NCBI GenBank assembly: GCA_964036045.1
Contig: OZ038378.1
Span: 199,764,001-199,828,000 of the forward strand
Reading direction: 5' to 3'
DNA length: 64,000 bases
DNA from: Eutreptiella sp. 'Long Island Sound 2002'
Lineage: Eukaryota > Protista > Euglenida
Shown: positions 30,751 through 63,017 of the stretch, one piece after another
How the letters are laid out: each line of letters opens with the position of its first letter
How positions within the stretch are numbered: position 1 is the first letter of the stretch
Program-made: the position numbers and the translations under genes
The notes under the pieces: generated by a model
What the model saw: the letters and a program-made list of their open reading frames with translations, nothing else
Databases searched by the model: none
Told to the model about the DNA's origin: nothing

Positions 30751-33369
30751 AAGCGTATCTCCACACCGAGTGCCAGTACAAGCCCATGCATTACGCCCAT
30801 GCAACCCTCTACCGCCCCAACACATGCAAAAGTCCAATAAGTACTGCCGATGCATGAGCATGACACAACACAAAGCGGTCTCAAGCGCACAACCTGGAAG
30901 CATGATGTGAGAAAGATCGCAGTACTGTAATACTGTAGTATGCTACAACCCCGCATCCAAGATCTCGCAGTTTTGATGACCATTTTGCCAAAGTGGTATG
31001 GTCAAGTCATGTCACGTTGCACAGCGCTGAGGTCGTTCAAAGCAAAATCGTTCAAATCAAAAAACTGGGAGTCCACCCCCTGCGACTGCTTGTGACCGCC
31101 TGCGACGCATTTCTGCGGATAAGGGAAAACCTGGGCAAATGAGACTCGCGCGCGGGCTCTGGAGTTTTGCAAATTTCTCGAAATTTTTGGCAGATTGAAA
31201 GGCGAGGAGCTGGGAACGTGTTTTTCAACTGTTGGTCCACCCGGTGCACTGTTTAGATTTACGTCAAATCGATTCCAGGTAGTTGATTTTTGGTCAAACT
31301 TTTGGGTGTTCCCGGGTGCTGTTTTTGGTGCTTACCTCAGCAAATGAGACCGAGTGTCAAAACCTCCTGTTCAACAACTTTGTACCACTGTTTTGTTTTT
31401 CAGTGAAGTTTGTTGCTTTAGAGTCTCTAAGGCCTATAGCTATGAGGTTGGTCTAGCAAGCGGTAAAGGGTCCTAGCACTGTTCTTAGCCTTTGTTCCTT
31501 GTTTGTTTGGGTGGGGGGAGTTTACGCCGAAAACAATCTTTGTCATGCAAGTTAGGTGTGTTAGCATTGCTCATTTAGGGTCTCCGGCCATTTTCTAGTG
31601 ACAAGGAGAGTAATGGTGTGTTACGATGGTGTTCTTAGGTGTATGATCACCAGGTGCAGTGGTTTTTTGGTCTTCATCTCCAGTTTAAACTTGTTCAACA
31701 GCAGTTCGTTGTCTTTGTTGTTTGTGTTTGCTTGTAGCATTTGAGCATTCTTGCAGCCATTCCACCTTGATGGGACATAGCATTCCCAAGTTTCCCAAGT
31801 GTTTGTGGTCTATTGGTTGCACTGTCAAATTGCCTTCGTGGGGATCCTTCTTTCCACCCAACGACGTTTTCGAGTTTGTTTGAAGTATTTTCACTCGTCA
31901 ATCACTCGTCAATCTGGTTTTTTTGGGCTTGCTGCCATTTACTGTGCCACTTTTGCCCTCATCTCCTTGCCCATCACAGCCGCTTGACGACGTGTGCGAC
32001 AAGGTGTGCATGATGGTGATTCGGAGTAGATGTTTTGTTTTTTTTGTATGACCATCCTTGTCTCGTCGTTGAAATCAATGTTGACCTAGATGTGATCATC
32101 ATGCATTGTTGAGGCATTCGGCATTTCGATTGTACATTGGGGATGAAAACAGTTTTGTTGAAGGTGACTTTTTGGGTGGAAAATATTGAGTGGAAAACCG
32201 AGGCTTTGTTTGTCAACGAGGCAACGCACAAAATCTGATCTTGATCGAAATACTTTAGAATCTCTCATGGAGTGCAACAAATAGTGCAAAACAACACTCG
32301 AAGAGACGATAAATGAGCCTAGAGGTCGCATGGGTTGTCCACACGACGTAGGAGTACGTCAAGGACTCGGGTTCGCCCCCATTTACTAACCGTTGTCGTC
32401 GAGCACTGTCTAGACTATGCTATGTTACCAACTTGTGGTGCAGCTTGAAGAGTTCCTCCGATCCACCGAATCCATGAGTCAAGTCAACTGTCCGTGGGGC
32501 GGTAACGTGTTCATCGTAGTTTTACTCGTCTTGAAGGTGAATAGAAATGTGCGAAGAACATGCGGCTTGTCGCCAATCCCCAAGATTTGCGTTGAAAGCA
32601 AAATTCCACTTACGCAAGTTGAGAATGCAACCCCAACACATCCTTGTTGTGGAAGAATTTTCAAGGTGTTCCACTGCTTGTGGATGCACGACCGACGTTA
32701 TTTTATTTGAGATGATATCAAGTGGGTGTGTACCATTGCTTTCGCAATATTTCCTACAAATAATGGTGCATCCGGTGAACGTTTGCCACAAAAGCATTGA
32801 GGAGTCCGCTAGAGTATGGTCACCGTGAAATGCCGATGTCGATGTGCACTTTGGTCACAATTTGATGAATTATGTCGGCTTGCACCCCATGAATTTGTCA
32901 TTTGCCCCGGCCCGATGAGTATGCCTTTTCAAGCTCTTTTACACCTCGGTCCTCTTGCACGCTTCATCTCATTCTTGTTCACCTATGAATGTAGCCATGA
33001 TTACTCGCATGCAGATGGTCGACGTTGAAGATGATGCACGAGGTTCGTGGAGAGAACGTGACTAAACCTTTTTGAAGGATTACTAAGAATGGGACACATC
33101 ACAAAAAATCCGTGGGCAAAGCGAACGCGTAGAAGGAAAGCTTAAGGTGATTGGTCGAGCCAATTGTTGCTTTCTATGCGCCGGGGGATTGCAGATACCT
33201 AGCGTATGAGCACTGTACGCACGTGGTGTTGCGAAACCACCCTCATTATGTTAATATGCTCAGAGCACCGTGGGAAGTGCTTGTGTTCGCGTAAACCGGA
33301 CTTTGGGCCCGAGGTTCATGGCAACAATTGGTTTGCCCACGTATCTGTAGTGTCCATTCTTTTTTGAAA

Positions 33370-36300: not shown

Positions 36301-39300
36301 TATGATCTTCCTCGACCCCGATGGTTCTGGGCAGATCACTGTGACCGAATTTGCGCGGGCCATTCGCGGCGAGATGAAACCTCCGCGGCGGGCCCTCGTG
36401 CTGCAGGCGTACCGGCTGCTAGACGAGAACTGCGACGGCTCCGTGACGCTAGGCGACATTCAGAACCTTTACGACACGTCCAAACACCCGGAGGTACGTA
36501 GCACCTGAATTTTTATCAATTTTTATCCTCACATTTGTATCGCAACCCTGTGACCTGCAGTAGTGCACTCGCATTCTTGCCATGGAAACATTTTCGAACA
36601 TCCAATGAGCCTGCCACTCGTGCGCAACGTACTACATGGGGTGGCGATCGCCCTGATCTCCGATAAGGAGCTCAGTGGGTTGGAGATGATGGTGCTGCGG
36701 GCAGGGGGGGGGGGGGGGCGACCCACCTCTCCCGCGCCACAGAGCTCGTCTTTTCCGTTCTGAAGAAACACACAGTGGAAGTTTTCCATAAAACCTGAGG
36801 TTTTGAGGGAGGGGGGGGGGGGGCACCCGCGAAGCGCACGCTACCCGCAACCAACAAGGAACGCGCCCTGCGCACGCGCGACCCACGGAGTGGGGGAGCG
36901 ACCGGGACAACGCGTGGAGGAGCGGGGCACCTGGGCCTCACGCACACGGAAACACAGCCAGGCAGGTCGGGGACGGCCTGAGGACGGGGGTGTGGGGACA
37001 GCAAAAACAGTCAAACGACCCCCGCAACAACCAGCACAATTCCAATACGCCAACTACTGGGCGCCGCTGACGCTTAAACGGCACATCCCGCCACATCCAG
37101 CACAGCCCCAGCACACCAACCACTGGGCTCCGCGAACGCGGAAACGACACCAGCAGGAGCACCGGCGGCAGCGGCCGACAGAAAGCAGCGACCCAACGCA
37201 ATATGCGAAGGGAAGAACCCCGTAAAGAAACAACAACAAGACGGAATGTCACACAGGGGCCAGTATTGAGGGTGACCTGTGTCCCGAACCCCCCCTCCCA
37301 TTTACCCATATGCCTGTCCTCTGTTGAGCTTGATGTTATTACTGTGAGGGTGTCACATGTTGACTCCTCGCCCGCTACTTTTCACTGCTTTGCACCTTTG
37401 AGCGCGGCCGTGCCACCTTCATTGTGCCCCTACAAAATCGTGCCAGCGAAAGAATGTGGGTGTGCTGTTTTGTTTCCGCTTGCAGTGGGTGAAGGGGGTG
37501 CAGGGCTGGGCAGGGCTGGGCAGTGCATACATCTTCTTCCAAAACAAAGGTCTACAACATGCTTCCACACTGTGTTAAAAAAAAGAATCAGTTTCGCAAT
37601 TTCGATTTTGGAGTTGTTGAGGCTAAAAGCTGCAAAAATTGCGGGTTGTGCCGCTAAACAGACTGCACATGGCAACTTTTGGGGGGGCATGGCCTTGGCT
37701 ACACGGGCCTCCTGGTCCCCATGGGTGCGAGAGTACCCAGATTGACACCAAATGATTGCAACCCGCCAAACCCAATTTCCAGCCCCAATCTAGGATGAAA
37801 CCACATTGGCTCTTGCCACCACACGCAGGTGCCTCCAAAACCTCCAAGAACTGCCCCACAGCTGGAACACGTGACCCAAGGAGACAAGTGAATATGAGGA
37901 GGATGCTGACCAGAAAGTTTCTTGATAAATTGGGTATTTAAAATGTAAGAAACTTTGCTGGTTGGTGTCCTCCTCACGAATACTCCACTCCTTGGGACAC
38001 CCTAGTCCGGCTTTGGGGCCTCTTAGAGGCTTTGCAGGCACCTGAGAACATGCATTGTATGTTTTCCTTGCACGATGCTCCGACAAGGGCTTGTGGGCAA
38101 ACGTTGTGGTGTGTCACTGTCACCGTGTGCCCCTGTGACCAGACCCCCACCTTCCCTGCACCCCAAAAATTTGTGCACTGGCGATTAATGATGTTGGAAT
38201 GATGGAGAATTTTGGGCCTATTTTGGGCTCACAAAACTTCCCCCTGAGACCTGTTCCCTCCCAATGCTGTAATATACAATAGAGGAAGCCATTTTGATCA
38301 TTTCATGCAACAACACTGGACCTCTGCTGAAGCCTAGCAAAGGCATGGTCATGGTGCATCCCTGGACACGGGCCATCATAACCAATCACTGTCGCTGCCT
38401 GCACACCCCTATCCCCACCTGCAGACATCCTTGCTACCACCTGCTCCATCCTTGCCAGTGCCCATACATTTTATCACTACCCACACATGCCCCACCCTCC
38501 CCACTGAGGGATGGCTTGCCCTGCCCGCTGCTTTGGCGTGTCTGGGGGCAATGGGCCTGAGTGACGATTTACCACACGATGCATGCATTTGTTTCATGTT
38601 CTTTCACACAGTGGTCTGTTGGACTGGAAGTCTTCAGGGCCCGCTTGTTGTTGTGCCTCTGGTCGGCTTACCCTTTTGCATGGTTTGGACGGGCTACACA
38701 AAGGTGGCTGCAAGATGGTGGTGTATTAGGAAGCACCGTGGTTCATCCCCAGCACGGAGGGAGGGCAGGGGGGCCGGGAGGCAAAAGGCGTGCTGCAGGG
38801 GGGGCCGATGGGCATGCCGTTTGTTTGAGGACCAGGCTTCTTGGCAACCATCCCCCGTGGACCGACCATTGCTGAGCCCATGCACCCACCCACCCACCCA
38901 CCCACCCACATCAGAAAAAATCTTCGGCAGCGAAACCGAGTGTACCGAGGGCCTTCTAATTAAAAGGGATGGCCAAGAGAAAGAGAGGTGCACAGTGCAG
39001 ATCAAGCGCCCTCCTGCCCCCAACAGACGGGAGAAGGAACAGGTGGTGTTTCTAAAGACATCAGGCCGAGGTGTGTGCATTCACGTGGCCCTGTCCTGCC
39101 TGTTAGAATACCCCACCAATCTATGCAAGGCCCATGTGGGAAGATAAACTCAAGAGGGGACAAAATTCCAAACATTCGTCCCATTTGAAACCCCTTGAGT
39201 GCCGTTGCCTCCGCCCCAACACCTCCTCCCCCTTGTCACGTATATGCTAATCACTAATCACCCCATTGACTGGCCGTGACCAGACCCTCTACACCTCACC

Positions 39301-39893
39301 CAGTCAGATGGGAGGAGTACACATGGGGTACGGAATGGTGACAAGACAGGATATCGCCATTCGGCTTTACTATTTCACCCCTGCAATCCCCCCCCCCCTC
39401 CCACACACACACCATGCGCACACACGTGCATGCACCCCCGCCCCCCGCCCCCCCATACATGCACCGATGAGAAAGAGAAGGAGAAGGAGGATCGGATGAT
39501 AGTGGACCATATCAAACGACTTCTCAGGTATTGGCTGGCGAGAAGACTGCCAAAGAGGTGCTGCAGGATTTCACGGCGGGTTGGGACAAGAACCAGGACA
39601 ACCAAATTACGGAGAGGGAGTTCTGCGACTACTACAACGACATCAGCGCCGGCATTGATGACGACCAGTACTTCGAGCTCATGATCCGCAACGCGTGGCA
39701 CATCAGTGGGGGCGAGGGTGCGGCGGAGAATACCAGCTGCCGTCGTGTGCTCGTCATTCACACAGACGGCTCAGAGACGATCGAAGAGATAAAGAACGAC
39801 CTCGGCATTGGTGCCCACGACAAGGAGAAAATGCTGCAGAACCTTCTAGCCCAAGGGGTCACAGACATTAAGCACGTCCGGCCCTATGCATAG
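33370..39893 (+). CDS. GYTGH-repeat plus calcyphosin-like EF-hand protein, 593 aa, join(33370..33914,34750..35284,36158..36493,39528..39893)
   Basis: Repeats IPGYTGH, IVGYTGH, SYTGH, IVGYTGH. Four EF-hand loops (DDDGNKKLSRYE, DPDGSGQITVTE, DENCDGSVTLGD, DKNQDNQITERE). Calcyphosin-like HPEV..GEKT, YFELMIRNAWH and RRVLVIHTDG. GT-AG introns in phases 2,0,0; 1782 nt. The intron 1 donor (GTCATC) is weak, so extra exons there are possible. Confidence 0.85.
35530..35692. repeat. Repeat family A, short copy (intron 2)
   Basis: Reverse complement of about 23789-23940. Confidence 0.8.
35920..36104 (+). repeat. 185-bp block duplicated at 37350-37534
   Basis: GTGTCACATGTTGACTCC...GCAGTGCATACATCT; the two copies differ at 2 positions. 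Confidence 0.95.
36850..37260. repeat. Repeat family A, long copy (intron 3)
   Basis: Reverse complement of about 23789-24200. Confidence 0.85.
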
Positions 39894-42801: not shown

Positions 42802-45800
42802 ATGGCCTCCGGGCGGGATCCGGGGTACACCGACGATGCCACGTCGGCGGATGAGCTGCTGGATCAGGCCAAGATCCTGACGCAGGCCCTATCAGAGAAG
42901 CCCGCTACGGTGGCTGTGCTGCTCTTTCCAAAGATCCACATGCTGGTGGTGCAGGAAGCCGACCGGTTGTTCCGGGAGCGGCATATCCGGGTCTACATCA
43001 CAGGCACCGTCACGCCGGGTTACGAACAGGGCTCCGCCTTCATGCAATTCGTGATGCTCTACCACAAGGTGGGTTGCGCCCCTCCCCCACTCTTTTACAC
43101 CCCCCCTTTTGTTGTATCCCGCTTGTCCTACCCCCCCCCCCCCCCTGTTGTTGCATCTCTCAGCTCGCTTTTTGTACCCCTATCCCCCTTCGTGTACCTC
43201 CACTTGTTGTTACAGGGGAGGGAAATTTTTCGGGAGGGTAGAATTTCGCGGGAAATTTTCGCCGTTAAGAAACGTGGCGAAATTACCCCTGCCGCGAAAT
43301 TTTCGAAATGCAGGTGAGAATTCAGAAACGTGCACCAGTGTACCAGGCGGAGGGAAAGTACAAAGATGTTTTTTTTTTTCAACATGCAGTGGTTGTGTGA
43401 CTGGAATGCATTGGAATGCTGTGTTGCCCAAGATTTTGAAAGTGCCCACCAGGAAATAAGAGGAACCATCAGGAAATAACAGCAAGTTTCAGGATTCCCG
43501 GAGGCGGCGAAATTTTCCCCGTCCAAATTCATCCCTGTCGACATTGTCCCCTGGCAAACTTGTCCCCCCCCTTGTACGGCCACATTTCCTGTCCTCCTTA
43601 CCCCCTGTGTTCTACCCCTCCCCGCCCTTGTTGGCCCCCCACCCCACACCCTCCTGTTGTAACCCATATTTTGTTGGGGGGGCAGCCAAGGGGGCAACCA
43701 AGGGGGTAGCCTGCCGAGTGCTAGCCCTTGGAGTGGGCATTATGGTGACTTTGTCATGCGGCAGACTGCACAGTTTTTTTTTTTGCTGATGGGGACAGGA
43801 GGCCTAATACGTTTGGAGTTGATTGCAAAGCTGTGAATTTTTTTTGGGAAAATCCACGGGTGCAAGGATTGGTTCATTGTGGAGAAAAAGACGGGCAGCT
43901 GGTGGTGTTTTCTTTGTTGCCTGTCCCGAGTGCCTAGGTTTGTTGCTCACAGCTCCTTCGAATGCTCACAGCCCTCCGGATCCGCCTCACCAACGGTGCC
44001 GGTGCTGTGGCACCATCTTGAAGTACCTGTGTAGCATGGAGGGGGATTTGAACCTATGACCTGCCGTGCAACGCATGGGGCATATGTTTGGACCACCAAA
44101 TGCCACGGTAGGGACAAGGTGAAAAGTCATAGAGATTCACGTGAATTGGTTCAAAATGTGCACAAAATTCGCATCCACGGCGATTTTCACATGTGTGCTG
44201 GCATGTGGCTGTGAATGTGGATTTTGTGTGCATTTCATGCGAATTTCACACTCAAGTTTTTGCATCGTGCTATACTGCATGCTACGACCAGGTGATTGAA
44301 CTCTAGGGGCAGAGGTTGTTGTTGCATTTTGCAAATTGTTGATTGTGTGCACATGGGATCTTCTTTCTCACGGCCACTTCTTTCTGCTTGTGTGTTCACC
44401 CAATGCCGCGGGGAGATGGGAACAAGAGCGCTGGCCCCTTCCTTGCCGTGCAAGCCCAAACCCACATCAACCCTGGGCTGAAGTCCCTTGAGGAGTTGTG
44501 CGGAAAGAGTTGGGAGCCCCTTACACATGTCAACTCCTTCCCGAAATTGGCCAAATATGTTAACCCCCCAAAAGGAGACCACATCGCTGGCTCCACCAAG
44601 CGAGCCGACCAAATGGGACAAGACGGTGTATGGGGGAGCCTTAAGCGCAGTGCGCGTGCAGTGCGCGTGCAGTGCGCGCGCAGTGCAACTATTTGGGCGT
44701 CTGGCCGTACTGGAGACCCATGCTTTGAGATCATAGGGGCATCATCGTTACCCTGTTGCGTAGGTTTTGATGCTTTTTCCACATTGGGGATATAGCATTT
44801 TTGGAATTTCACCCAATTTCACCCATTTCCACCCTTTTTCACACTTTATCTCTATTTGCAAGGGCTATTTGGACCATGTCTTTGTGCAGGATACTACCCA
44901 TCTCTTTGAATTGTGCTATGCCTGTGATTCCAAGCCAAGTCGCATTTGAATTCGCCATCAAATTCTTCGTCCGGCTGGTCGCATCAACTTACGAGGGTTG
45001 ATGTGGCTGGTGAAGCGAAAGACCCGCCAGAGGGTGAGTAGTTCAACTCCGAATAATCTCGTAGCGGAAATTGCCTCCGCGGGGCTGTCGCCGCAACGGT
45101 CGTCGTATTATGTCGACAAAGGTTTCGATGCACATACGAAAGGAGGTACCCCCGGCCGACTCCCCCTCTACATTAGAGGATGTTGAGGGGGGCAACCAAT
45201 ACGCTGTTCATGGCTGTTCGAGATGTGCATGATGTGTGTTATGTGAAGGGAAGGTAGTTTGCAATTTTCTTGAGCTGGGGCAGTTTGGGTCACCTAATTC
45301 TAAGGGCGTTTCCAAGGGGCGTGCCTAGGGGCTCTTCTGGGGGAACATAGTCTAAAAGTAGCGCGCAGTGCGCGTGCAGTGCGCGCGCAGTGCGCGCGCA
45401 GTGCAAGGATTCCCCCTATGCGTAATGGTGCCTCCAGTTGCTTCACCTATCGGGGATTGAGGCCCAATAACTCACACCGCTACTAGCAATGGGTGTTACG
45501 TGGCGTGGCGTGCACGGCACCCTCCGCCAACTTGCACAACCTGCGGCTCAACTGTTTGCAGCGGAGGATGGGAACAACACCACCATCTACAGTGCAGCAT
45601 GCCCCCTACCAGCCCGGCTGCAGCACTTATACGAGTGCCGACCTATTGCGCCCATAGATGTACAACAACCGAGACCCCCTAAGTATCATTGGTTGCCGAT
45701 AGCCGTGGACGGCACCAAAAGGCACGAGGCCAGCTACGTGCACTGTACAATAGGGGCTAGTACTAGTCCGGATGAGCTTGCCTATTGGTGGCTCATTGGG

Positions 45801-48800
45801 GGATCAGAGGAATGGGGCACGTTGTATGCAGCTGCTGTTGATTTTGACCGAGAGCTCGCTGATGCTAGTAAGGTTACCGTCGTTGACACGGCTGGGGAAG
45901 GCTGTGAGCCCCTTTTTCTTTTTATGTGCCGATGGGAAGGCACAGATTTTGCTAAGTGGGTGCAAAAACTGGAAGGCTGAGTCCCCACATGTCAACTGTG
46001 TGCTGGGTATGCGGTCATTACGCACACATATAGGTATACGCAAAGACGCGCTGAACGTATGAGCGAACACTATTGCGCGTGTACGTTTACATGTATAAGC
46101 TTGTAGACGTACAGCCCTCCGAAAACCTTAGATACTACGACCGCTGAAGGACGAACGCTGCAGGATGCTGCCTGAAAGTGGCCAAAGCACAAGAGGAGGA
46201 GTGTACAGATTTGTGGTAGATCACAACACTGAGCCTTTTGGCATCGTTGTAGCGTTATGCCATGTATTCGGAGACATGCCATCATGCCCGTTGTCAAATC
46301 ATCTGCCCCCCCTTTTCCTGGGCCAGTGAAAGACCGCTGCACCTAAGAAGCTGGACCATCCACAGTGAGCGGTTTTCAGCTTGGTAAAGTCACCAAAACG
46401 ACGGGCATTCTGCACGAGACCTGCGGAACCGCCCCCTATGAGTAGGAACTCTCTCAACAGCAGACGTTCCTTCATCTCTTAGGTCTTCCAGGCGAAGATC
46501 GCAGAGCTTTTCGCGACACTACAGGCGTGTCGGAAGGCCGTCGCCCATGCCAATGCCACAGTGCCGGAGATGGAGCGGTGGCTGAAGATCCAGCAGCTTG
46601 CAGAGATGGAGCAGGAGACTCTCGTGGCGGATTGCCTCCTCTATGCAGCTGCCGTGACATACTTTGTAGCATTCCCTCGGCCGATGTACGCCCACCTGCT
46701 CAGCAAAAGCCGCGCACTTTGCAAGGCAAACCACCTGACTTGCACGGATTCGGACGGCTTCCAACTCGCGCGAGCCCTTGGGCTGGGCGGCTTCCGTTTC
46801 CTCGACCCTGAGGTGGAGCTACTGGGTACCATGGGCCTGCCTCATACTGACCCGCACACCAGGTGTGTGTGTGCACATGCACGCTCAGCAGCTTCACAGT
46901 GCCTGTTTGTCATGTTCATCGTGTGTGCGCACGCATGTGTGTGTGCCCGTGCGTGCACTGGCGTGTTTCTCAGGGTCAGGCTTTCCACTCCAACGCCGTG
47001 AAAACTTCTGGTTGTTATGATGCAGATATTCCGGTTGCAGTCCTGTTATGAAAAGGAAGGCCACAGATGTGCACAGTTTTTGACACTCCTGTTTTCAATT
47101 TCAAACTCAGGGTCTAGATCATTGATACTCGAAATGCAGGCCAGGCTGCCCCCCCCTCCCTGCGCAAGCACGGGCTTGTCCAAGCAGGGCGACCCCATCT
47201 GACCGTCGTTTTTTTCCGGTTTTTTTCCGACCGCAGTTTCTATGGTCAGAAATGTAACGTGACGCGGTTTTGCTCCGATTGTAGAGAGAAAAGGTGGCTG
47301 GATCATGCTTGTGGTAGTTCCTCCTGCTCATACCAACATTCTGCTTGCAACTGCGCTGTTTGTTTTGATGCATTTTTCAGCCATGGATGATGTTGCTATC
47401 GCTGGCATGGCTGTTAGGTACATCTGGTCCACCGGTGAACATGTGCCCGTCACTATTATTGGTCCTTCTACTCGTGGAGATGATTCTTTTCATGTGAAGT
47501 ACCTGCGGAATGGGCATGAGATTGAGCATCATGCTCCTTTGCACTGTGTCCTTTTTCCAATCCAATCCAATTGTGATCAGGGTAAGGTATGGGCAGGTTC
47601 TCGCTACGTACATTCTTTTGGTACTGCGTGTCGTGCGCAAGCACAGCCTTGTCCAAGCATGGGGGCCCATCTGACCGTTGTACTCCCGATTTTCAGCGTG
47701 CTTGCACAAGGTGGGGGGTACGAAAATGAGGTCTTGGAAACCATCTGTGTCAATGGAAACAAGAGGCATCTTGTTGGTGCTCCTCTCAAACAATTATCGT
47801 GAATGTCGGCCTTGATCCAAAATTCCCAAAAGTTCCCGAAAAATGTGGTGTGCATATCAGTCTTGCATCCCAGAAGCAAATTCCATTTATTCCTACACAT
47901 GGTACACACATCTATCAATGCTGTCCACCCAAGGCCGGCCCCAAAAATTTTGGTAGGAATGGAGGTGGGAGCAGATGTGGGAGCGGATGTGGGCGCAGAG
48001 GGGGGAATGGAGGTGGAAGTGGAGGTTGAAGTGGAAGTGGGAGTCACCACCGTACAGCCCACACGCCGCCTGCCCAGGCTGCCTGTGTGAGGCCTTCTTA
48101 CCAGTTGTGAAATGGTAGGCTCCTCTCACCAGTTCGCTTTCCTTGTTCCCTGTGAGGCAAGCTCCAGGCTCTGGCTTGCTGGTGTCTTTTTTCGCCTTTT
48201 CTGTACTGGGAGTTGCTTGCTTCATGTCTGTAAGGGATGTGGCGGTCGCTGTGGAGCTGTTGGCTGGGCCCAATGGCGCTCGGTGGCCCTTCATACTGGA
48301 CCCTCTGGGCATCTTCGTCAAGTGGCTGCAGGCGAGCCTCCGCTGCAGCGGCGCCAAAGTGCTGCAGCTGGCGCAAGACCCCGTCCAGAGCATCACAGAC
48401 CTCGCCCAAGCTGCCCAGGATGGGCTTCCGGTGGTGCTGACGGGCGTAGGCCACATGTTGCCCCCACCGGTGCTTCCGTTCCTTGACCGCGCCTACATTC
48501 GCACGCACGGCAAAGTGAAGCTCCCGTTCGCGGTGCCAGTCGGCGGCACCGAATGCGCCGACGTCCCGGTGGCGAGCGGCTTCATGCTGTTCCTCGTGTC
48601 CACTGCACGGCACACTACGGGCCTTCCGAGCGCAGTGTTTGCCCTCACGAGCCCAGTGTGGGTGGCGCCGTCCGCCGGGATGCTGGGAGCCGTGTTCCTG
48701 CCGGCAGTGCTGCAGCTCACCGAGCCAGCCGTCGCAGCGGATCTGGGGGAGCACGCGACTGACGTCGCCACGTACAGTGCGATGCTGCGCGACGCGGACG

Positions 48801-51800
48801 CGGAGTGCCGCGTGGCAATCGCGGACCCCGGTGCGCTAAAGGCCGCGCGCGCCCGGTACGTGCTGCTGGACTCCAAATGCATGCAGGCTGGCGACCTCAA
48901 GGCCCGTGGAACTGTGATCCGCGACGCCTACGTCCCGGTTGCGGAGCTGCTGAGCCGCCTGTATCTCGTGGCCTACCACGGGGGCCGTTGCGGTGCACCG
49001 GAGGAATTTGTCGAGCTGTTGGGCGCCGGGGCCGCCTCCCACTTATTGGCCGAGGCAGACACCGGGGAGGACCCGGGCCAGCGGGCGATGGCGGCGGGCG
49101 CTGGGCTCACGGAGGCCGTCCTCCAGCACTTCGGGTCCAATTTCGTGCTCACGAGCGCGGCGGCCGTGCGTTGCTTCCCTGACCCCGACCCCGATGCGGT
49201 AGAGGCCCCGGTGAGCGATGAGATCTTTGCGCTCGAGGGCACCGGCAGCGACAAGCAGTGCGTGCAGTTGACCGTGGTGGACCTGATGGACGTGTTTCGG
49301 CGCTTTCCGGGGGAGATCTCCGACGTCAAGATGGACGCAGGAACGCTGGGGGTTATGCGCGCGCAGCTGCAGGTCCCACTCCATTCTGCTGCCACCACAC
49401 GCCGCACCGGACCACGCCACGCCACACCACAAGCCGCCCCTTCACACCCTGGTCCTGTCCCAAGTGTCGACCATTGAGTCTCTGGATTGCCAGAATGAAC
49501 CTGACTTTATAACAAGTGACGAGGGCTCTGCAATGGAGTTTAGCGCGGATGTTAGCTCAACTAGGAAACGTAGGACCCAGCGATAAATCTAGCTTCCCGG
49601 CCTGACACTCTCCCCTCCCATACCTCCCAGCCTAAGGTTAACCATCAGACCTGTGGCCGATTGCATGCCAGCCTCTGAGCGCGGTCTCGTGGATATCTGA
49701 AGCTGCCCCAGTAGTAACATGCAGACTGCTTTGGGTGGTCGACAAAACACGGCAGCCATTGAAAGACATGTGGTCCACGATGTGTACTTAATGGTCAGCG
49801 ATGAAGAACCCTATTGAATGAACTGCCGAACATTGCTGCATATGCATACCAGGACGTGTGTATGTGGAGTGCTTGTTGACCTGTGTGCGGCCTTCACACC
49901 CCACCCCACCACACCACACACCACCACACACCACCACACCACACCACACCACACACCACACCACACCACCAGGGGGACATCCCATCCCCCCAGCCTGTGG
50001 GCCATGCCCCGTTTGGTGGCTGCTACCCACTGCTAACGCTCCTTAGGCTGCAACCATGGGCCCGGGGAACATCCCATTCCCCGGGCCTGTGGGCCTCGCG
50101 CCTTTTTGGGCCCACTACCCCCCCTCGGCACTCCATAGGCGGCGACCTCAGGCACAGGGGGACATCCCATCCCCCCGGCCTGTGGGCCTTGCGCAGTTTT
50201 GGGTCCACTGCCCCTTGCATTGACAGTGCACCGAAGCGTATCCACTGCCCACTGCCCCAGGCAGTGTGGCAGTGCGCTGAAGGATACCCACTGCCCCCTC
50301 ACATATGACTAATCCCCTCGGGCTGGGATTGGTGCTTGGAAATTGCCTATGGTCAATGCACGGAAAAAGTGCTTGGAAATTTTGCTTCGATCGTTTCAAT
50401 ACCAAACGAGTTGTTATGTCTCATTAGAAGTTTTTTCGGGGTGATCCTAGCAAGAAGTGGTTGGGGAAAGCAGTTCCAGACATACCGCGGCACACCATCA
50501 CGTTGAAGCAATTGTTGTCTCCATGGTCCAACTAAAAAAAGTCGGTTGTGAAAACCAGAGAAGAGATGTAGCAATACCTTTGACCAAATATACATTTTAT
50601 GGGAAATATATTCGTTACAGGTGTGCAGGTGTGCAGTGGGGCAGTGCATGGAAGGATAACCCCTGCCCACTGCCCCTTGAAGCGTGGCGGTGCAATGAAG
50701 GATGCCCACTGCCTACTGCCCCATGCAGTGCAGCAGTGTACCGCAGGATCCCCACTACCCACGGCAAAGGTAATGAAGGTTGCCTGCTGCCCCCCGTAGT
50801 GCGGTAGTGCGCCGAAGGATAGCCACTGCCCACTACCCCCTTGCAGGCAATGCGGTTGTGCGCTGAAGGATACCCACTGCCCATTGCCCGTTGCAGTGTG
50901 ACAGTGCACAGAAGAATCCCACTGCCCACTACTCACGGCCCCGTGCAGTGTGGCTATAGCAGTGCACTGAAGGATGCCTGCTGCCCACTACCCCGTGCGG
51001 TGCGGCAGTGCACTAGAGGATACCCACTGCCCACTGCCCCCGTTGTGTGGAGGTGCACTACTGGATACCCATTGCCCACTGCCCTCTGCAATGTGGCACT
51101 ACCCTGAAGGATGCCCACTGCCCAGTGCCCCATGCAGTGTAGCACTGCACTGAAGGATACACACTGCCCACTGCCCCCGCAGTGCGGCAGTGTATTGCAA
51201 AATCCCCACTACCCATTGCCTACTGCAGCGCAGCATTGTACAGAAGGATCAGCACCGCCCACTGCTCCATGCACTAAGGCAACATACAAATGCCGCCCTG
51301 TTACCCACTGCCCCAAGCAGTGAGGCAATGTATAAAACCAGCCCCACTGCCAGGTGCTGCATGCGGTGCCGTTGTGTACTGAAGGAGCCCCACTGCCTAC
51401 TGCCCCCATGCAGTGCAACAGCGAACTGAAGGATGCAATGCGGCCATGTACCGAAGGAGCCCCACTGCCCATTGCCCCATGTAGTAAGGCAGTGTGCTGA
51501 AGGATCCTCACGGCCTAATGCCCCATGCAGTGAGGCAGTGTACTGAAGGATCCCCACTACCCATTGTGCAGTGTGGTGAGGTAGTATTTTGGAGAAGCCC
51601 CGTTGCCCCACCCCATGCAGTGAGGCACTAGTGAGGCACTGTACTCAAGGATCCATGGTGCCCACTGCCCCACGCAATGAGGCAATGCACCACAACATCC
51701 CCCTTGCCCATTGCCCCTTGAAGTGAGGCAGTGTAGTGAAGGATCCCCATAGCCCATTGTGCAGTGTCATGAGGTAGTGTTCTAAAGGAGCCCCGTTGCC

Positions 51801-54800
51801 CCGCCCCATGTAGTGAGCCAATGTACTGAAGGATCCCACAGTGCCCATTGCCCCACGTAGAGGCAATGTATAGAACGGTCCCCATTGCCCACTGCCCACT
51901 GCCCACTGCAGCAGTGTTTTAAAGGATTCCCTTTTATAGAATGCCCTATGCAGTAGGGTGGTGTGAAGAAGGAGCCCCACTGCCCATTGCCCCATGCAGT
52001 GTCACAGTGTATGCAAGATCTCCACTGCCTGCTAACCCATGTAGTGAGGCAGTGTACTGAAGGATCCTAGCTGCATACTAGCCCATGTAGTGCGGCAATG
52101 TATTGCAGGATCTCCATTGTCCACAGCCCCATGCAGTAAGGCAATGTATTGCAGGATCTCCACTGCCCACAGCCCCATGCAGTGAGGCAATTTACAGAAG
52201 GAGTCCCAGTGCCCATTGCCCCATGCAGTGAGGCAAGATTTTGCAAGATCCTCACTGCCCACTGCCCAGTATCTTCACTGCCCACTGCCCCATGAAGTGA
52301 GGCACTATACAGAAGGAACCCCATTGCCCATTGCCCCATGCATTGCAGCAGTGAACTGAAGGATCCCCACCGCCCAGTGCCCCCTTGCAACGAGGCAGTG
52401 TACTAAAGGAGCCCCATTGCCCACTGCCCCATGAAGTACAGTAGTGTAATGAAGGATCCCCACCACCCACTACCCACTGAGTGCGGTGCTGTACAAAAGG
52501 AACCCCATTGCCCACTACCCCATGCAATGAGGCAGTGTTCCGAAGAAGCCCCGCTGCACACTGCCCCATCGAGTGCAGTAGTGACTTGCAGGATCCCCAC
52601 TGCCCACTATCCCATTAAGTGAGGCAAACTACAGAAGGAGCCCCATTGGCTATTGCCCCATGCGGTGATGCAGTGTACTGAAGGATCTCCGCTACCAATT
52701 GCCCCATGTAGTGAGCCAGTGCTTAGAAGGTAAAGTGCCTCACGGCATGGGGTAGTGGGTAGTGGGGCTCCTTCTCTACACTGCCTCATTACATGGGGCA
52801 GTGGGCAACGGGGAGTTGGCAAGCCACTGCTACGCTGCATGGGGCAGTGGATAGCATGGCTTCTTCTATACATCGCCTCACTGTAAAGGGCGGTGGGCCT
52901 CACTGCATCAGGCAGTGGGTAGTGGGGCTCCTTCTTACCAATGCCGCACTGCTATGGGCAGTGAGCGGTGGGGCTCCTTGAGTACACATCCGCACTGCAT
53001 GGGGCAGTGGGCGGTGGGGATCCTACAATCATTGCTAAACTACATGAGGCAGTGGGTAGTGTGCCTTTTTCTCTACACAGCCTCAGTGCATGGGGCAGTG
53101 GGTGGTGGGGCTCCTTCAATACACTTCCTCATTGCATGGGGCCGTTGGCAATGGGGCTCCTGCATGCCTTGTTGCATGGGGGCAATGGGTAACGGAATCC
53201 TTCGGTACACTACCTCACTGCATGGCGCGGTGGGCAGTGGGAATCCTTTAGTGCACTGCCTCACTGCATGGGACAGGGGAGGGTTAGGTGGAATGGAATA
53301 GATAGGCCTGATACGCCCTTGCCAGTCCACGGCGATCAGCGGTGGCCGCGAGGTAAAAACCAGCCGGGGGTTTGTCTACCATTGGGGCCGCACGATCTAG
53401 CTCACCACGGCCATGGAGGACGTCATGGCCACACTTGTAGTGGCCGTGGTACTTGTGGTGTATGAGCAGCCCACGAATGACCTCCCCAGGAACACCCACT
53501 TGCACAGGCTGCCGGTGAGCCTTTCGGACATCCAAGTGCAAATGGAGCCCCACCCTTACATGCGTGCCTACAAGAGCACCCCTATGTTGCTACGCTCCAG
53601 TAGCTCCAAGCTGGCCCCACGAAGGGCCCCACAATGGTATGGCACCAGGCGCTGCTAGGGCAGCGCTATAGGGACTGGGTGTCCCACGTGCGGCACACAG
53701 TACGAACCATCATGGTCACCGGTACCCCTCGAAAAAAAACTAGCACCCGCTGTAGGAATTTTTTTCCGCAAGGAGGATTTGCATGTAACCTTCACGTTGC
53801 TACATTGTGCGCCATAAGGAAAATTTGCTTCATCTGGTAGAGTGTGAAAAATTGGGTTTGCACCCCATGTGTCTATAAATACTCAGATTTTTCAGGAGAA
53901 CTCAATAATGGATGAAAACCATATTGGACCAAATATCAATACCGTCCCTGTGCAGACAGCTGTCAGAGATGGCTTGTACCCTACTGGGTAAACATGGGTA
54001 AACAGTGCCTCTCTGATGGGAAGGACTTGCGTTCAATTCCCAGGGCTGGCAATCTCCATGATTACAGGTAGGATGTGAATGGAAATTTTTTATTTTTGGT
54101 TTTGTTGCTTTTTTGTGCTTTTGTGCTTTTGTGCTTGTCCCCTTTGTTGGAGACCCCCGAGAATGCAGGGTTATGTAGCATTTCCGCCCACTTTTGGGCT
54201 TGCCGATAAGAGGCCAGGGTCGGCGCTGCACAGCCGGAACAGACCGGGCGTCTTTGTGCCCTAAAACACAACTACCACCCATATCGGCTGAAACATCAAT
54301 GGTTACCTTGAAAAATATCCTCCTTGCACCTTCCAAACCCAAAGAGATGGGGTAGAGTTGAGGAATTTCAGGTTTGGGGGTCCGAAAAAAAATTTCGCGC
54401 GATTTTTTTCCGTACCCCCCCCCCCTGCCCTCTGGGGGTACCCCTCGAAAAAAAAGCTGTACGCCGGTACCGGGAATCCCCCCCCCCCCCCCTTGTACAT
54501 GGCCCTCCATGCCTGCACGTGCTGCCGTCGGAGCTAGGCCCCGCCCCGCGAATGCACTTGCGGGAACATTTCCGGGATAGCGCGACGCTTGACCCCCATT
54601 GGGCCCCCACGGCGGCGCCTCAGTACTTGCAGCCTTGTATGGGGCCAGGCGTTTGGTTTCATGACTTGCCGCCGGGAGCTATGACCCGCGGGGCCATCAT
54701 AGCAACCGACGCCAGCACCACCCCGGCGGGAACGGTCATGGTGCTCGCATATGAGCGTGCACCAGGGCAATACAACATTAAGGCAGCCTCAGGAGTGGGG

Positions 54801-56507
54801 ACCTGTCAAGAGGGCGAGGCCCCAACCCTACTGCTAAGCGCTTGCCAAATGGCACTGCAGAAGCGCATATTCTGCGTGGTACCAGACTCGGAGTTTGTTG
54901 TAGGCACCCCATGCACCTACTAGGAGGGCAGACATTGCATGGACGGCATACACCACTTGTATGCGCATACTGTGGGGGCCCAGCGCCTAACCTTGAAGGA
55001 CGCAATCAACATCGTGGTCACACCATCGCAGTGTATAACCACCATCAATGTGCGGGTGGACATTGCCACTAGGGGAGCCGCAGGCAGACCTTACCTGGAT
55101 GCTGTGCCGGCCTTATGCCTTCCCATGTGCGGCAAGTTCCGGCACCACTGCAAGCTGGCCCCAACGGATCCGTAGGAGTGGCTGCAAGAGCAGGCGGTGA
55201 TTCCCGCTGGGTGCAATATGAGCACTGACGGGGACAGAACTGCGGGAAAGGCCTCGGTCTGCCTCTGGACTGGTTTACTAGTGACCAACAATGGCACTTG
55301 GTGGCCCATCAGATGTGCAACCTCCCCACCATGATGGTGTTAGCGGAGCGCTCCGAGCACACAAACGTACAACTGTGCACGCATTGTGCACGCATTGTCT
55401 GCTGTGTGGAAGCAACCCGGAAACGGCCCGACATCGATGGGAGTGCCCAGTGCAATCCCATGAGTGGCGGTTGGTAGGGCCTGCACACGTGGCTAAGCAC
55501 CTCTGTGGGGCCAAGGGCGTCGTAAGTGCAAAGCCATGGGGTTGGCAGGACTGCACAATATGGGGACAGAATCTGACAGGTGCTTTGGGAGTCACAGAAG
55601 GTCTGGCTGGCCCACACCAGAGCTCGCGACGGCCTCACCCAGGCCCGCTTGGGGCCAGAAGGCACAATGGCGTGGGCGTTGTGAGACCTCCAACTGCACC
55701 AGCAGGCGGAGTGGCAGGGCGTCCCCAGGGCAGCCCTGAACTAAGGCCATTGTATGTAGGGACAGCTGTCCCCCGCCACAGGTGCACAACACACAGCACA
55801 CAGCGCGCGTTCAGACACACAGCCCTCCCGTTTTGCATTACCCGTATGCAAGACATCCCGTCCATTTGGTCACAGTGCCTTCAGCACACCACATCAACCA
55901 CACCACACCACACCACACCACACCAAACCACACCACACCACACCACACCCATTGCCACCCCCTGCCATCCCGCCTTTGCTATCACTGAAACCAGGTTTTG
56001 GAGCAGCGGCCAACTGAGCTTAAGGATTTTACGAATTTCAAGGAAACATTCGAGAAGATGCGAACGCTGCATGCGGTGTACGAGGATGAGGTAAAGGCGC
56101 TGCACGCTCAGCTGTGCGTCGCAGTGGCCAAGGACCCAAAGTCCAGCGACCACCCGAACGCCGTGAACGCAATGGAGGCGTTTGCGGTGCTGCGGGACAT
56201 GCAGAAGGCGAAGGACCCCGCAGAGCGCTTCATGCTGCAGCACACGCCGCAGTTTCTGCAGAAGCTGCACACGGAGGTGGTGGGGCTCACGCAGCGGATG
56301 CAGGACAGCAAACTTACGCTGATGGAGCAGGATTCTGAGGCAGCGCTGGTCGCCATCCATGATTATAAAAGCGAAGTGGAGCTTCTGACAGCGCAGGCCC
56401 AGATGTTGGGTGGAGCGGCCTGGCGGCTGCATGCGGTGAGCAAGGCCCTCGTTTTGTGCCGGTCTCGCGCAGATGAGCTTAGCGATACGTTTGCGTCCCA
56501 CAAATGA
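42802..56507 (+). CDS. Rearranged dynein-heavy-chain-like protein, about 765 aa, join(42802..43068,46483..46862,48235..49372,55995..56507); may extend further 5'
   Basis: KIH..V....RLF...RVYIT (AAA4 end); EMERW...LVADCLLYAAAVTYF...GLP.D (stalk base); RWPFILDPLG and IRDAYVPVAELLSRLY (AAA5); then LEQRPTELKDF...LQKLHTEV...QDSKL (tail-like). GT-AG introns in phases 0,2,0. Confidence 0.72.
44040..44113 (-). mobile_element. tRNA-derived SINE head
   Basis: Minus strand shows A-box GTGGCATTTGGTGG and B-box GGTTCAAATCCC at tRNA-like spacing; cloverleaf not intact. Confidence 0.55.
44644..45406. repeat. Two (GCAGTGCGCGY)4 arrays about 715 bp apart
   Basis: Arrays at 44644-44688 and 45359-45406 in direct orientation. 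Confidence 0.85.
45489..45980 (+). other. Unassigned 163-aa ORF in dynein-like intron 1, probably transposon-derived
   Basis: Open frame with no coiled-coil character and no recognisable motif. Confidence 0.2.
50620..53265. repeat. 2.6-kb degenerate minisatellite with an internal orientation flip
   Basis: Units of about 40-50 bp, consensus near CCCACTGCCCCATGCAGTGAGGCAGTGTACTGAAGGAT, forward to about 52730 and inverted from about 52740. Confidence 0.9.
53700..54500. mobile_element. Non-autonomous insert interrupting a LINE relic
   Basis: GGTACCCCTCGAAAAAAAA near 53720 and 54436; C-runs at the right end; inner segment related to the 60780 repeat head (GGGTTATGTAGC...CCCACTT). Confidence 0.5.
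54505..55880 (+). mobile_element. Non-LTR retrotransposon 3' half: RNase H and C-terminal zinc-knuckle-like domain
   Basis: IATDAS, TCQEGEA, VVPDSEFV and IVVTPSQ..IN.RVD (RNase H D/E/D/D-type motifs); CLLCGSNPETARHRWEC; frameshifted. Confidence 0.7.
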
Positions 56508-56550
56508 AGGGTGAGCTCCTTGTGGAAGTGCATGGGACTTTTGGCGTGTG

Positions 56551-56644
56551 TGGGGTGGGGTGGGGTGGGGTGGGGTGGGGTGGGGTGGGGTGGGGTGGGG
56601 TGGGGTGGGGTGGGGTGGGGTGGGGTGGGGTGGGGTGGGGTGGG
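56551..56644. repeat. (GGGGT)n pentamer array
   Basis: About 18 perfect units; related (CACAC)n tracts at 49900-49966 and 55900-55950. Confidence 0.95.
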
Positions 56645-58430: not shown

Positions 58431-58435
58431 CATTG

Positions 58436-58735
58436 TTGTGTTGTTGTTGTTGTTGTCGTCTTGATCATTGTTGTTGTTGTTTTTGTTATTGTCGTTGCTG
58501 TTAGTGCTGGGGCTGCTGCCGCTGCTGTTGTTCCCGTTATCGTCTTCGCCGTCGTCGTGTTCCCTGTTATTGTTGTTATGGTTGTTGATGTTGTTCTTCT
58601 TCTTCTTGTTGTTGTTTTTGTTGTTGTTGTTGGTTGTTGTTGTTGTTGCTGTTGTTCTTATTGTTTCTGCTGTTGCTGTTGCTGTTGTTGCCGTTGTTGT
58701 TATTGTTGTTGTTGTCGTTGCCGTTGTTGTTGCCG

Positions 58736-58782
<47 letters not shown>

Positions 58783-58786
58783 GCCT

Positions 58787-58821
<35 letters not shown>

Positions 58822-58825
58822 GCCT

Positions 58826-58878
<53 letters not shown>

Positions 58879-58882
58879 GCCT

Positions 58883-58974
<92 letters not shown>

Positions 58975-58975
58975 G
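58436..58975. repeat. (GTT)n microsatellite of about 540 bp, degenerate 5' half and near-pure 3' half
   Basis: Direct reading; produces the poly-C/V/L/T/N ORFs. Confidence 0.97.
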
Positions 58976-59756: not shown

Positions 59757-60779
59757 GTATGCAGGAGGGCCCAGGGGCTTGCGTTAATTTTCATTCTGAC
59801 AGGCGGGGGGACCCTCCCCCCTGGACCCCCTCCCCCCCTCCCCCCTTCGGCACTGGTCTGGTTTGCACTGCGGTGCAACAAGGCAAAACAATGCACAGAG
59901 AGAGCTGTGGCGATGGCCATATGCCTGTGACACGGGGGTATATGCGAGCTCTGTATCCGTTGCTTTATGGCCCCCCGCCCTCAGCTGAAGTGCAGCTGAA
60001 AACCTGCGTTTTGGGGACTTTTTTAGTGACGGAAAAACAAAATCTCAGTGCCTTTGGCGAATGCCATACACTGGTAGTTGCCTATGCTTCTGCTCCGTGG
60101 TCTGAATATGATGCTTCTGCTGTGGCAGCAGAATCACCTCGAAGAGAGCTCGTTAGATCAAGCGCAGGCGCGGGCGTCGTATACCCCCTTTTTTGAGGTC
60201 ATTCGCGTAACATACCCCAAGGCATGATATTTGATGTCCAACCCCTTGTAAAAGTGTATGTTGTAATTCGTGTAATTTTTTTTTTTTCGCTGTAAATGCG
60301 CGTAACAAAAAAACCGTATAGTCGTGTAATTTTTTTTTTCCCGCTGTAAGTCGTGTAAGCCGGCTTACACGACTTACAGCGAAAAAAAAAAAATTACACC
60401 ACCTGACGGTTTTTTTGTTACACGCATTTACAGCGGGAAAAAAAAAATTACACGACTTACAGCGAAAAAAAAAAATTACACCACCTGACGGTTTTTTTGT
60501 TACACGCATTTACAGCGGGAAAAAAAAAATTACACGACTTACAGCAAAAAAAAAAAATTACACGACCTGACGGTTTTTTTGTTACACGCATTTACAGCGA
60601 AAAAAAAAAATTACACGACTTACAGCAAAAAAAAAAATTACACGACCTGACGGTTTTTTGTTACACGCATTTACAGCGAAAAAAAAAAGAATTACACCAC
60701 TTACAGCAAAAAAAAAAATTACACGACCTGACGGTTTTTTGTTACACGCATTTACAGCAGAAAAAAAAAGCGTCAGGGG

Positions 60780-61510
60780 TTATGTAGCCACCTTGCCCAC
60801 TTGTGGGCCACTTCTGATTCTGCCCCCCGCTCTGCAGCGGTGGGGCTCCCCGATACGGCAGGGGTGAGGTAGCCAATTTGCCCACTTGTGGGCCACTTCT
60901 GATTCTGCCCCCCGCTCTGCAGCGGTGGGGCTCCCCGATACGGCAGGGGTGAGGTAGCCAATTTGCCCACTTGTGGGCCACTTCTGATTCTGCCCCCCGC
61001 TCTGCAGCGGTGGGGCTCCCCGATACGGCAGGGGTGAGGTAGCCAATTTGCCCACTTGTGGGCCACTTCTGATTTTGCCCCCCGCTCGGAAGCGGTGGGG
61101 CTCCCCGATACGGCAGGGGTGAGGTAGCCAATTTGCCCACTTGTGGGCCACTTCTGATTTTGCCCCCCGCTCTGCAGCGGTGGGGCTCCCCGATACGGCA
61201 GGGGTGAGGTAGCCAATTTGCCCACTTGTGGGCCACTTCTGATTTTGCCCCCCGCTCTGCAGCGGTGGGGCTCCCCGATACGGCAGGGGTGAGGTAGCCA
61301 ATTTGCCCACTTGTGGGCCACTTCTGATTTTGCCCCCCGCTCTGCAGCGGTGGGGCTCCCCGATACGGCAGGGGTGAGGTAGCCAATTTGCCCACTTGTG
61401 GGCCACTTCTGATTCTGCCCCCCGCTCTGCAGCGGTGGGGCTCCCCGATACGGCAGGGGTGAGGTAGCCAATTTGCCCACTTGTGGGCCACTTCTGATTC
61501 TGCTCCTCGC
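60780..61510. repeat. 85-bp tandem satellite, about 8.5 near-identical copies
   Basis: TGGGGCTCCCCGATACGGCAGGGGTGAGGTAGCCAATTTGCCCACTTGTGGGCCACTTCTG recurs with period 85. Confidence 0.97.
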
Positions 61511-61907
61511 TCTGAATTTTGTCCCCTTTTGTTTTTGCCCTTCGTGTATGCAACAGTGTCCTTCAAGCAATGCTCTGCGAATGGCACCGGGGCATACACG
61601 AAGAAATCGGCCACAATGAGTTCCGTGGGCACGGATGATACCCTATGAATACACATGCAATGTACTATTGCTTGGCTGTTTGGGACTCTCTACCCTTGAG
61701 CTGACGAAGGAGCTTATTCGTCATTCAACGGTGAGGAGCCACAAACCCATGATATGGTGCAATGCATGTGGGGGACCGACAATGAAAGTGCATTTCCTAT
61801 TTTCGGCTGCTATGCCAATTGGACATTCTCTGGGTTACCTTCAGCCTCCGGCTTGGCTGTCCCCCCTCTTTTGTGTGTGACATTTCCTCTTTGCTAGTGT
61901 GTAATAT

Positions 61908-62210: not shown

Positions 62211-63017
62211 CGGGTGCATGTTTTGTGGGCTGTATTTTCCTCCGCCGTTTGGTGTACCAATGGTGGAGCGTATAAGATTGCTATAATATTGGCCCCATGC
62301 CAGTGCCTTGGTGGCCTATAATGGTGGCAGTAGCGTTGGCCATGGCCCTGTCGGGACTCTTTTTCTTGAGCCTGATTTTGTTCCCAGTGCAGGCACACTG
62401 GATGTTGGCCATGGCCCTGTCAGGACTCTTCTCTTGGGCCTGATTTTGAGTCTAGTGCCAATGACAACATGTGAAACTATGTTATATTGGCCGAGTCCCA
62501 ACTAATTGGTGGCCACGCAGAGTACTATGTGCTTTGTGGACTCGGCGTCCCATCGTTAAGGTCGCTATGGGGTGCCGTACGGAACCGGCAGCTGTACATA
62601 TTGCGCATGTATTGCAAAGGTTGGATTTCTTTCAATTTTTCAATTTTTTTTATAATTTACACGACTTACAGCAAAAAAAAAAAAATTACACGACTTACCG
62701 CAAAAATTAAAAAATTCAATTTTTTTTTATAATTCACACGACTTACAGCAAAAAAAAAAAATTACACGACTTACAGCATAAAAAAAAAAATTACACGACT
62801 ATACGGTTTTTTTGTACACGACTTACATTTTTCACCTTGTAAAATCATTATTTTACCCAATAAGACAATCCCCCAATGGATTTTTTGATTCTGAGGCCTC
62901 TATCCCCTAAAACTGGATATCACTTTTTTGAGGGGGGGGGGGGGGGGGTAGGGGGTGGGGGGGGTCAAAAGTTTTCGCTCAAAAGGCCACACAGTGGGGA
63001 GACGCTGTACTGTAACA

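Follow-up and report, generated by a model that had tools for sequence, protein, structure and literature searches.

Can the parts of a dynein heavy chain be taken out of their ring, joined in another order and still be retained by natural selection? The question is raised by a gene in a stretch of 64,000 nucleotides from the euglenid Eutreptiella sp. 'Long Island Sound 2002' (assembly GCA_964036045.1, contig OZ038378.1, positions 199,764,001 to 199,828,000 of the forward strand), which we refer to as the window and in which all positions are counted from the first letter. Dynein heavy chains have one of the most rigidly conserved architectures of eukaryotes; their neck, the final bundle of the tail, comes just before the linker (DHC_N2) and AAA1 and some ~2000 residues ahead of AAA5. 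A reading made from the letters of the window, which we refer to as the sequence-only reading, had claimed that an AAA5-like region is here spliced in frame to a segment of dynein tail of the DNAH6 type, with AAA6 absent, and had described the locus as a chimeric, permuted or tandem-derived dynein gene. Our analysis supports, with a probability of roughly 0.75, a euglenid-specific family of non-motor proteins that originated from an axonemal dynein heavy chain and consists of AAA5 followed by the neck. The order is permuted since the neck, found ahead of the linker in dyneins, follows AAA5 in this protein.

The gene is made up of four exons on the forward strand, designated A, C, D and E, which hold 765 codons and a stop (2298 nt in total, or 766 codons with the stop). 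Exon A (42802–43068) opens with the ATG at 42802, encodes the N-terminal 89 aa and ends at the donor AAG|gtgggt. Exon C (46483–46862), bounded by the acceptor ..ctcttag| and the donor ..ACCAG|gtgtgt, encodes the stalk base and the beginning of AAA5, and the codon split at its end takes its third base from the start of exon D. Exon D (48235–49372; AG acceptor, donor ..CAG|gtccca) encodes the AAA5 module, the strut and a variable linker, and exon E (55995–56507; acceptor ..aaccag|) encodes a neck-like domain of 170 aa and four helices that ends at the TGA at 56505–56507. All three introns are GT–AG. The intron between exons D and E (49373–55994, forward strand, 6622 nt) parts the AAA5-derived from the neck-derived portion, and the two exons join in phase 0 with the frame open to the stop codon. 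The peptides quoted in the sequence-only reading, and the splice that it drew from the AAA5 exon to the exon at 55995, are present as it described them. From the N terminus onward, the product consists of the 89 aa of exon A, the stalk base, the AAA5 large domain, the strut with the start of the AAA5 small domain, the variable linker and the neck bundle. Within exon D, the AAA5 large domain (Pfam AAA_9) occupies ~48275–48796 and includes the motif RWPFILDP at 48281–48304; the strut, or buttress, hairpin and the start of the AAA5 small domain follow at ~48737–48979, and a poorly conserved, low-confidence linker region at ~48980–49300. The linker amounts to ~110–130 residues, with low values of the predicted local distance difference test (pLDDT) at residues 455–586 in the AlphaFold model of the orthologue P0009 introduced below, and the neck-like domain begins in the final ~20 residues of exon D. 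One further open reading frame (ORF), at 45471–45977 of the forward strand in the first intron (169 codons), was not counted as an exon; it has no counterpart in the orthologues and no Pfam match, and it is probably non-coding.

Relatives of the gene are few. A phmmer search with the frame of exon D against 1.84 billion representative proteins gives 8 matches in all: the window's own ORF, two clear relatives and five weak matches to canonical dyneins. The two relatives are P0002, a euglenid protein of 754 aa from a complete MMETSP transcript of 2872 nt with both untranslated regions, and P0003, 687 aa of Euglena gracilis (EG_transcript_4446) with its 5' end truncated. A profile search retrieved a third euglenid protein, P0009, from the GGOE transcriptome, with a complete ORF of 768 aa. 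All three derive from transcripts and match exons A, C, D and E in collinear order, exon A aligning with residues 1–89 of P0002 and 1–90 of P0009. In each of the three the D/E junction is contiguous, reading ..AQLN VLKNRP.. or ..AQVQ VL(Q/R)KRP.. where the window has ..AQLQ|VLEQRP.., and each stops at the same residue as the window protein. The window protein is 33–39% identical to these orthologues, with no stops and no interruption, and the fused protein has therefore been under long-term constraint. In comparisons at full length, the database orthologues stood in for the joined exons of the window. Short ORFs on three ENA genome contigs (P0010–P0012) are 76–93% identical to parts of P0002 and, judged from their sequences, appear to show that the gene, split into exons, is present too in the genome assembly of an organism closely related to the P0002 species.

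These transcripts bear directly on whether exon E might belong to a separate transcript, or its juxtaposition with exon D be an error of assembly. The 6.6-kb intron between them is filled with repeats, and the presumed RNA runs of this species, at ~4 Mb each, contain nothing of the locus, as either account would allow. However, three independent euglenid transcriptome assemblies give the same junction and the same C terminus, the phase and the splice sites fit exactly, and downstream of position 56507 there are simple repeats only, with no convincing coding sequence to which exon E could otherwise belong. Because contiguous transcripts of three other euglenids cross the junction, we treat both accounts as excluded in practice, with almost no probability left to them. 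Around exon D itself, a contig of 1754 nt from an independent DNA run spans 47788–49541 with zero differences, and exon D and its donor site are therefore correctly assembled. The misassembly and the separate transcript that the sequence-only reading had named as grounds for refutation are thus both contradicted.

A further consideration is whether the locus in this species is a decaying or silent pseudogene copy of a gene that is expressed elsewhere. The searches returned no protein derived from a transcript of this species, and its three runs presumed to be RNA, each with ~4 Mb of contigs, contain none of the words of the locus and give no match on 46400–49999; this counts against a functional gene, though runs of that size are too small to tell much, and their silence says little. 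On the other side, the four exons are open and in phase, the GT–AG sites, the start and the stop are intact, and the conserved residues of the family are retained. A pseudogene is accordingly quite improbable, and we infer that the gene is expressed in this species.

The dynein ancestry of the first half of the protein is readily recognized. On exon D, Pfam AAA_9 (dynein AAA5) scores 35.9 bits (E 5e-9) against a cut-off of 27.4 bits, and it is the sole domain above threshold in any member of the family (window exons, P0002, P0003 and P0009). In the PDB, phmmer with exon D finds dynein chains at residues ~3100–3290, all weakly; the best match of the AAA5 part is a single-headed inner-arm chain of Chlamydomonas (E 7e-5). 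An hhalign comparison of the family with the C-terminal halves of canonical dyneins reaches 99.5% probability over 321 columns (P0002 residues 118–462), beginning where stalk coiled-coil 2 ends (EMERW), continuing across the AAA5 large domain and stopping at the end of the strut (R..Y.PVA..). An AAA5 module with its strut, placed after the stalk position as in dynein, is therefore present. By BLASTP and phmmer of individual exons against the inner-arm f-alpha (IDA f-alpha) chain of this genome, exon C alone is recognized, at residues 3487–3522 (BLASTP E 8e-5).

The remainder of the motor is missing, namely AAA1–4, AAA6, the linker, the coiled-coil stalk and the microtubule-binding domain. With AAA_9 as the only domain found in the window exons, P0002, P0003 and P0009, there is no ring of six AAA+ modules and no catalytic AAA1 P-loop. 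The 89 aa of exon A give a non-significant hhalign result against the whole dynein profile (P 0.78, with the top alignment in AAA4), and AlphaFold assigns them a pLDDT of <50. The terminal ..LYHK helix of exon A may be a remnant of the base of stalk coiled-coil 1. Only ~35 residues separate this helix from the EMERW motif, and an antiparallel coiled-coil stalk with a microtubule-binding domain is therefore absent; the Pfam MT profile gives a weak match in P0002 (E 0.049) that covers only profile positions 292–338 of 344. Nor does AAA6 follow AAA5, as the frame ends and the three orthologues end at the same residue. DHC_N2, the linker, has no Pfam match in the family, and the protein terminates where DHC_N2 would start. 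In place of the canonical order of tail, linker and AAA1 to AAA6, the neck-like domain sits C-terminal to AAA5. The claim that AAA6 is absent and that tail sequence comes after AAA5 is borne out by the stop of the frame, by the shared end of the orthologues and by the homology of the C-terminal domain to the neck, to which we now turn.

The evidence from sequence comes from profile–profile comparison. A profile of four C-terminal sequences was run with hhalign against a whole-dynein profile of 25 full-length f-alpha-type dyneins, whose 4627 match columns also cover eight other bundles of the tail, together with the stalk and strut. Locally, the best match falls on dhcC8 residues 1267–1364 (score 25.7, P 0.068), with the stalk as runner-up (P 0.21). 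The best global placement is on dhcC8 ~1219–1400, where PF25007 occupies 1201–1310 and DHC_N2 starts at 1380, and this region corresponds by alignment offset to human DYNC1H1 ~1155–1336. Enriching the neck profile raises the score step by step, with P going from the 0.068 of the whole-dynein scan to 0.017 with seven paralogues of this genome, to 7e-4 with fourteen inner-arm-type sequences, and to 4.8e-5 with a merged set of 20 sequences (score 39.6, 135 of 170 columns). Throughout, the register is constant and places VL.RP on the conserved ..P..L of the neck. Control queries against the merged profile remain well below the real score of 39.6, the reversed query reaching 19.2 and the best among 100 column shuffles and 100 block-of-7 shuffles 23.2. 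Lengthening the query by 70 residues upstream brought no gain, as MAFFT misplaced a fragment of the end of exon D, and hhalign runs with a very low mact were too greedy and were set aside. In addition, the protein-language-model features of exon E in the Atlas lie nearest to the PF25007 (DYH2-5-8_CC)/DHC_N2 clusters (0.95, with 206 of 256 features shared).

Structure prediction leads to the same segment. AlphaFold2, given exon E and the three orthologues, returns a confident four-helix model (pLDDT 88.6, predicted template modelling score, pTM, 0.74). With VIA-align, the top match of this model is residues 1157–1337 of the human cytoplasmic dynein-1 heavy chain (8pr1_A; Z 11.3, 163 of 170 residues, root-mean-square deviation, rmsd, 4.0 Å), followed by 8pr0_A 1152–1327 (Z 8.9, 159 residues, rmsd 2.9 Å); all remaining matches over the full model show an rmsd of ~6 Å or more, most of them 8–15 Å. 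The best Foldseek TM-scores also belong to dynein tails (9e23_f, 0.66; 8pr1_G, 0.56). The placement on human dynein-1 by structure (1157–1337) and that by sequence (~1155–1336) coincide, and profile and fold together go beyond the controls. The C-terminal domain is very probably homologous to the dynein neck, from the C-terminal part of PF25007 to the first residues of DHC_N2. Testing the two halves separately, as the sequence-only reading had proposed, thus places the first on AAA5 and the second on the neck by hhalign, and its placement of a tail segment just upstream of DHC_N2 agrees with the enriched profile, the whole-dynein scan, the structural match and the language-model features alike.

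A number of results nevertheless weigh against this reading. In Pfam, exon E and the C termini of the orthologues give chance-level coiled-coil matches only. Searches by phmmer and hmmsearch with exon E and with a three-sequence profile find no dynein among all PDB chains, and the same two queries find only themselves in the 2.28-Gb genome of this species. An Atlas feature query with residues 560–768 of P0009 does not reproduce the PF25007 neighbors and instead gives 0.76 to clusters of AAA_9 fragments. On the structural side, Foldseek has no match with E ≤ 0.001, a Z of 11 lies within the chance range for helical bundles, and a search of a representative set of structures returns generic half-domain bundles, with a dynein tail chain in none of the best 50 matches. 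Finally, the full-length AlphaFold model has a pTM of 0.32, with domain packing that is unreadable, and a function as a non-motor scaffold or regulator would be reached purely by inference. Membership in PF25007 itself was not found, as neither exon E nor the C termini of P0002 and P0003 match it at E ≤ 1, and the window is absent among the matches of PF25007 in the genome. In the Atlas, a shape search finds nothing above a TM-score of 0.5.

Taken at face value, such results suit a different account, in which the 170 residues at the C terminus form a helical bundle or coiled coil of other ancestry, resemble the neck through convergence or by chance, and were gained as a new tail by a truncated dynein, with no permutation. 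The silence of Pfam and HMMER, the lack of a Foldseek match at E ≤ 0.001, and an Atlas query with P0009 that attains only 0.76, to clusters bearing AAA_9, would all be expected of such a domain, as would the low Atlas recognition value of exon E and the Z of 9–11 that generic three-helix bundles reach over half of the model. It is harder to reconcile with a score of 39.6 where 200 shuffles do not exceed 23.2 and the reversed query gives 19.2, or with the climb of that score, from P 0.068 to 4.8e-5, as the neck profile is enriched. Moreover, the neck is the best match among 4627 columns of dynein, and the only structure to match the full length of the domain with a low rmsd is this very segment. 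We consider an unrelated bundle unlikely.

The neck homology also has to be set against the possibility that the order is collinear after all, with the C-terminal domain a diverged extension of the AAA5 lid or a diverged AAA6. By eye, the residues right after the strut resemble the canonical AAA5 small domain, and the P0009 query in the Atlas comes nearest to AAA_9 fragment clusters, although weakly (0.76). However, the hhalign alignment with the canonical C-terminal halves ends at the strut, and the whole-dynein scan has no match downstream of AAA5, its second match being the stalk at P 0.21. A collinear order is thus very improbable, slightly more so than a pseudogene.

We therefore return to the permuted, neck-bearing derivative and to what it could do. 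The absence of the motor parts listed above makes ATP hydrolysis by a ring and walking on microtubules impossible. Dynein AAA5 binds no nucleotide, and since the protein contains no other AAA module, it would be a non-enzymatic scaffold or regulator, formed of two folded modules on a flexible tether. A possible origin is that a parental gene for an inner-arm-type dynein was duplicated or had its segments shuffled, upon which the AAA5 and neck fragments would have been joined. The D/E intron lies ~10–20 residues from the boundary between the two dynein-derived parts, and its position is consistent with what exon or segment shuffling would leave, short of proof. Each of the retained modules could bind the partner of its dynein counterpart, probably in the flagellum, and a flagellar role is the most plausible because of the axonemal-dynein ancestry and the restriction to euglenids. 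The protein is thus a candidate lineage-specific flagellar regulator.

As to the type of the parent, the inner-arm-type neck profile outscores the IDA f-alpha profile (32.5 vs 25.7), and both halves may lie slightly nearer to the single-headed inner-arm chains, a class that these sequence comparisons indicate only weakly. The assignment to the DNAH6 type by the sequence-only reading is accordingly no more than weakly indicated. Of its description of the gene as chimeric, permuted or tandem-derived, permutation stands; the gene does not encode a dynein heavy chain, being instead a derivative of 765 aa that keeps fragments of one.

A more specific possibility follows from the geometry of the folded motor, in which the neck, as the linker's base, is positioned next to the stalk base and above the ring on its AAA4/AAA5 side. 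The family could be a free-standing copy of this neck/AAA5 interface, produced by permutation of an inner-arm gene, which would dock on flagellar dyneins or compete with them as a euglenid-specific regulator. We regard this as unlikely. If it were true, this would be the first natural dynein heavy chain to have been reduced and permuted to a mini-protein.

The surroundings of the gene are rich in repeats. The D/E intron contains a CA-rich array near its start (49895–49969), a 46-bp satellite at 50958–53161 that takes up much of its length, with higher-order units of 92–137 bp and ~65–80% identity between copies, and (CACCA/CACAC)n at 55885–55949, just upstream of the exon E acceptor. A perfect (GTGGG)19 at 56550–56644 starts 43 nt past the stop codon. 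Within the intron between exons C and D, the stretch 47120–47720 belongs to a repeat or mobile element that is highly abundant in this genome, with a word depth of up to ~73,000 in a DNA run, against ~38 for single-copy sequence, and with many contig joints. Farther downstream, a long (TGT)n and 24-bp repeat array at 58433–58975 gives rise to spurious long ORFs in several frames, and tandem arrays lie within 60365–61514 and 62639–62800; these include an 85-bp unit in 8.7 copies at 98% identity (60774–61514) and units of 82/161 bp made of TTACACGACTTACAGC and A-runs. Upstream, a gene on the forward strand at 33328–39893 has repeated GYTGH motifs, resembling ciliary microtubule inner proteins of the FAM166/CIMIP2 type, followed by calcyphosin-like EF-hand exons; Pfam scans of its single ORFs gave nothing significant.

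The genome also contains ordinary dyneins. Its inner-arm f-alpha dynein (G000:C8:18034987-18048918, reverse strand) is encoded by a single uninterrupted, intronless frame of 4636 aa from the first Met, and is 100% identical to a Eutreptiella gymnastica UniRef protein over the 601 residues compared, from which it follows that the DNA comes from that marine species or from a strain very close to it. Of the further dynein loci, some are open frames of 2300–4800 codons and others are split into many small exons. One paralogue (G000:C1:145802229-145805999, reverse strand) has its stalk shrunk to a short Gly/Pro-rich link, from the base of coiled-coil 1 to the end of coiled-coil 2. The hidden Markov model of the family matches ordinary dynein AAA5 with E 1e-22 (P0005, P0008) and this stalkless paralogue with E 1e-14, and the boundaries of the stalk deletion in the paralogue differ from those of the family. 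On account of the weaker match and the different boundaries, the family is not an offshoot of the stalkless paralogue.

Set beside known systems, the euglenid protein stands closest to the axonemal dynein heavy chains, especially the single-headed inner-arm chains (DNAH1/6/7-like), with which it shares the stalk base, the AAA5 large domain with RWP(L/F)ILDP, and the strut. Their neck just before DHC_N2 can be aligned with, and superposed on, its C-terminal domain. In contrast to their 4000–4600 aa, it has 765, with the neck after AAA5 and not before AAA1, and it also lacks the C-terminal domain of dynein and the tail proper. At the PF25007 (DYH2-5-8_CC) and N-terminal PF08393 (DHC_N2) edge, the counterpart of exon E is reached only by profile–profile and structure comparison. 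Constraint across the euglenids suggests that sub-modules of dynein can fold and be useful alone and in a new order, and the AAA5/strut unit with the neck bundle offers a natural minimal construct for study.

Non-motile 'pseudo-motors' have been described among dyneins as well. DNAHX of sea urchin is reported to keep AAA1, AAA4 and the stalk with its microtubule-binding domain, modified by inserted sequence and degenerate ATPase motifs (PMC11785096). DNAHX and DNHD1 resemble the euglenid protein in being derived from dynein with motor function lost (PMC11785096), and so demonstrate that parts of dynein are open to reuse. That DNAHX and DNHD1 are full-length chains in canonical order is our reading of that preprint rather than a statement of its authors. 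On that reading, the euglenid protein departs from the complete architecture of DNAHX and DNHD1, consisting of two fragments only, in permuted order. The literature that we searched describes neither these transcripts nor any dynein derivative that is both reduced and permuted. The comparison supports placing the family among the dynein-derived non-motor proteins as a new, conserved variant specific to the euglenid lineage.

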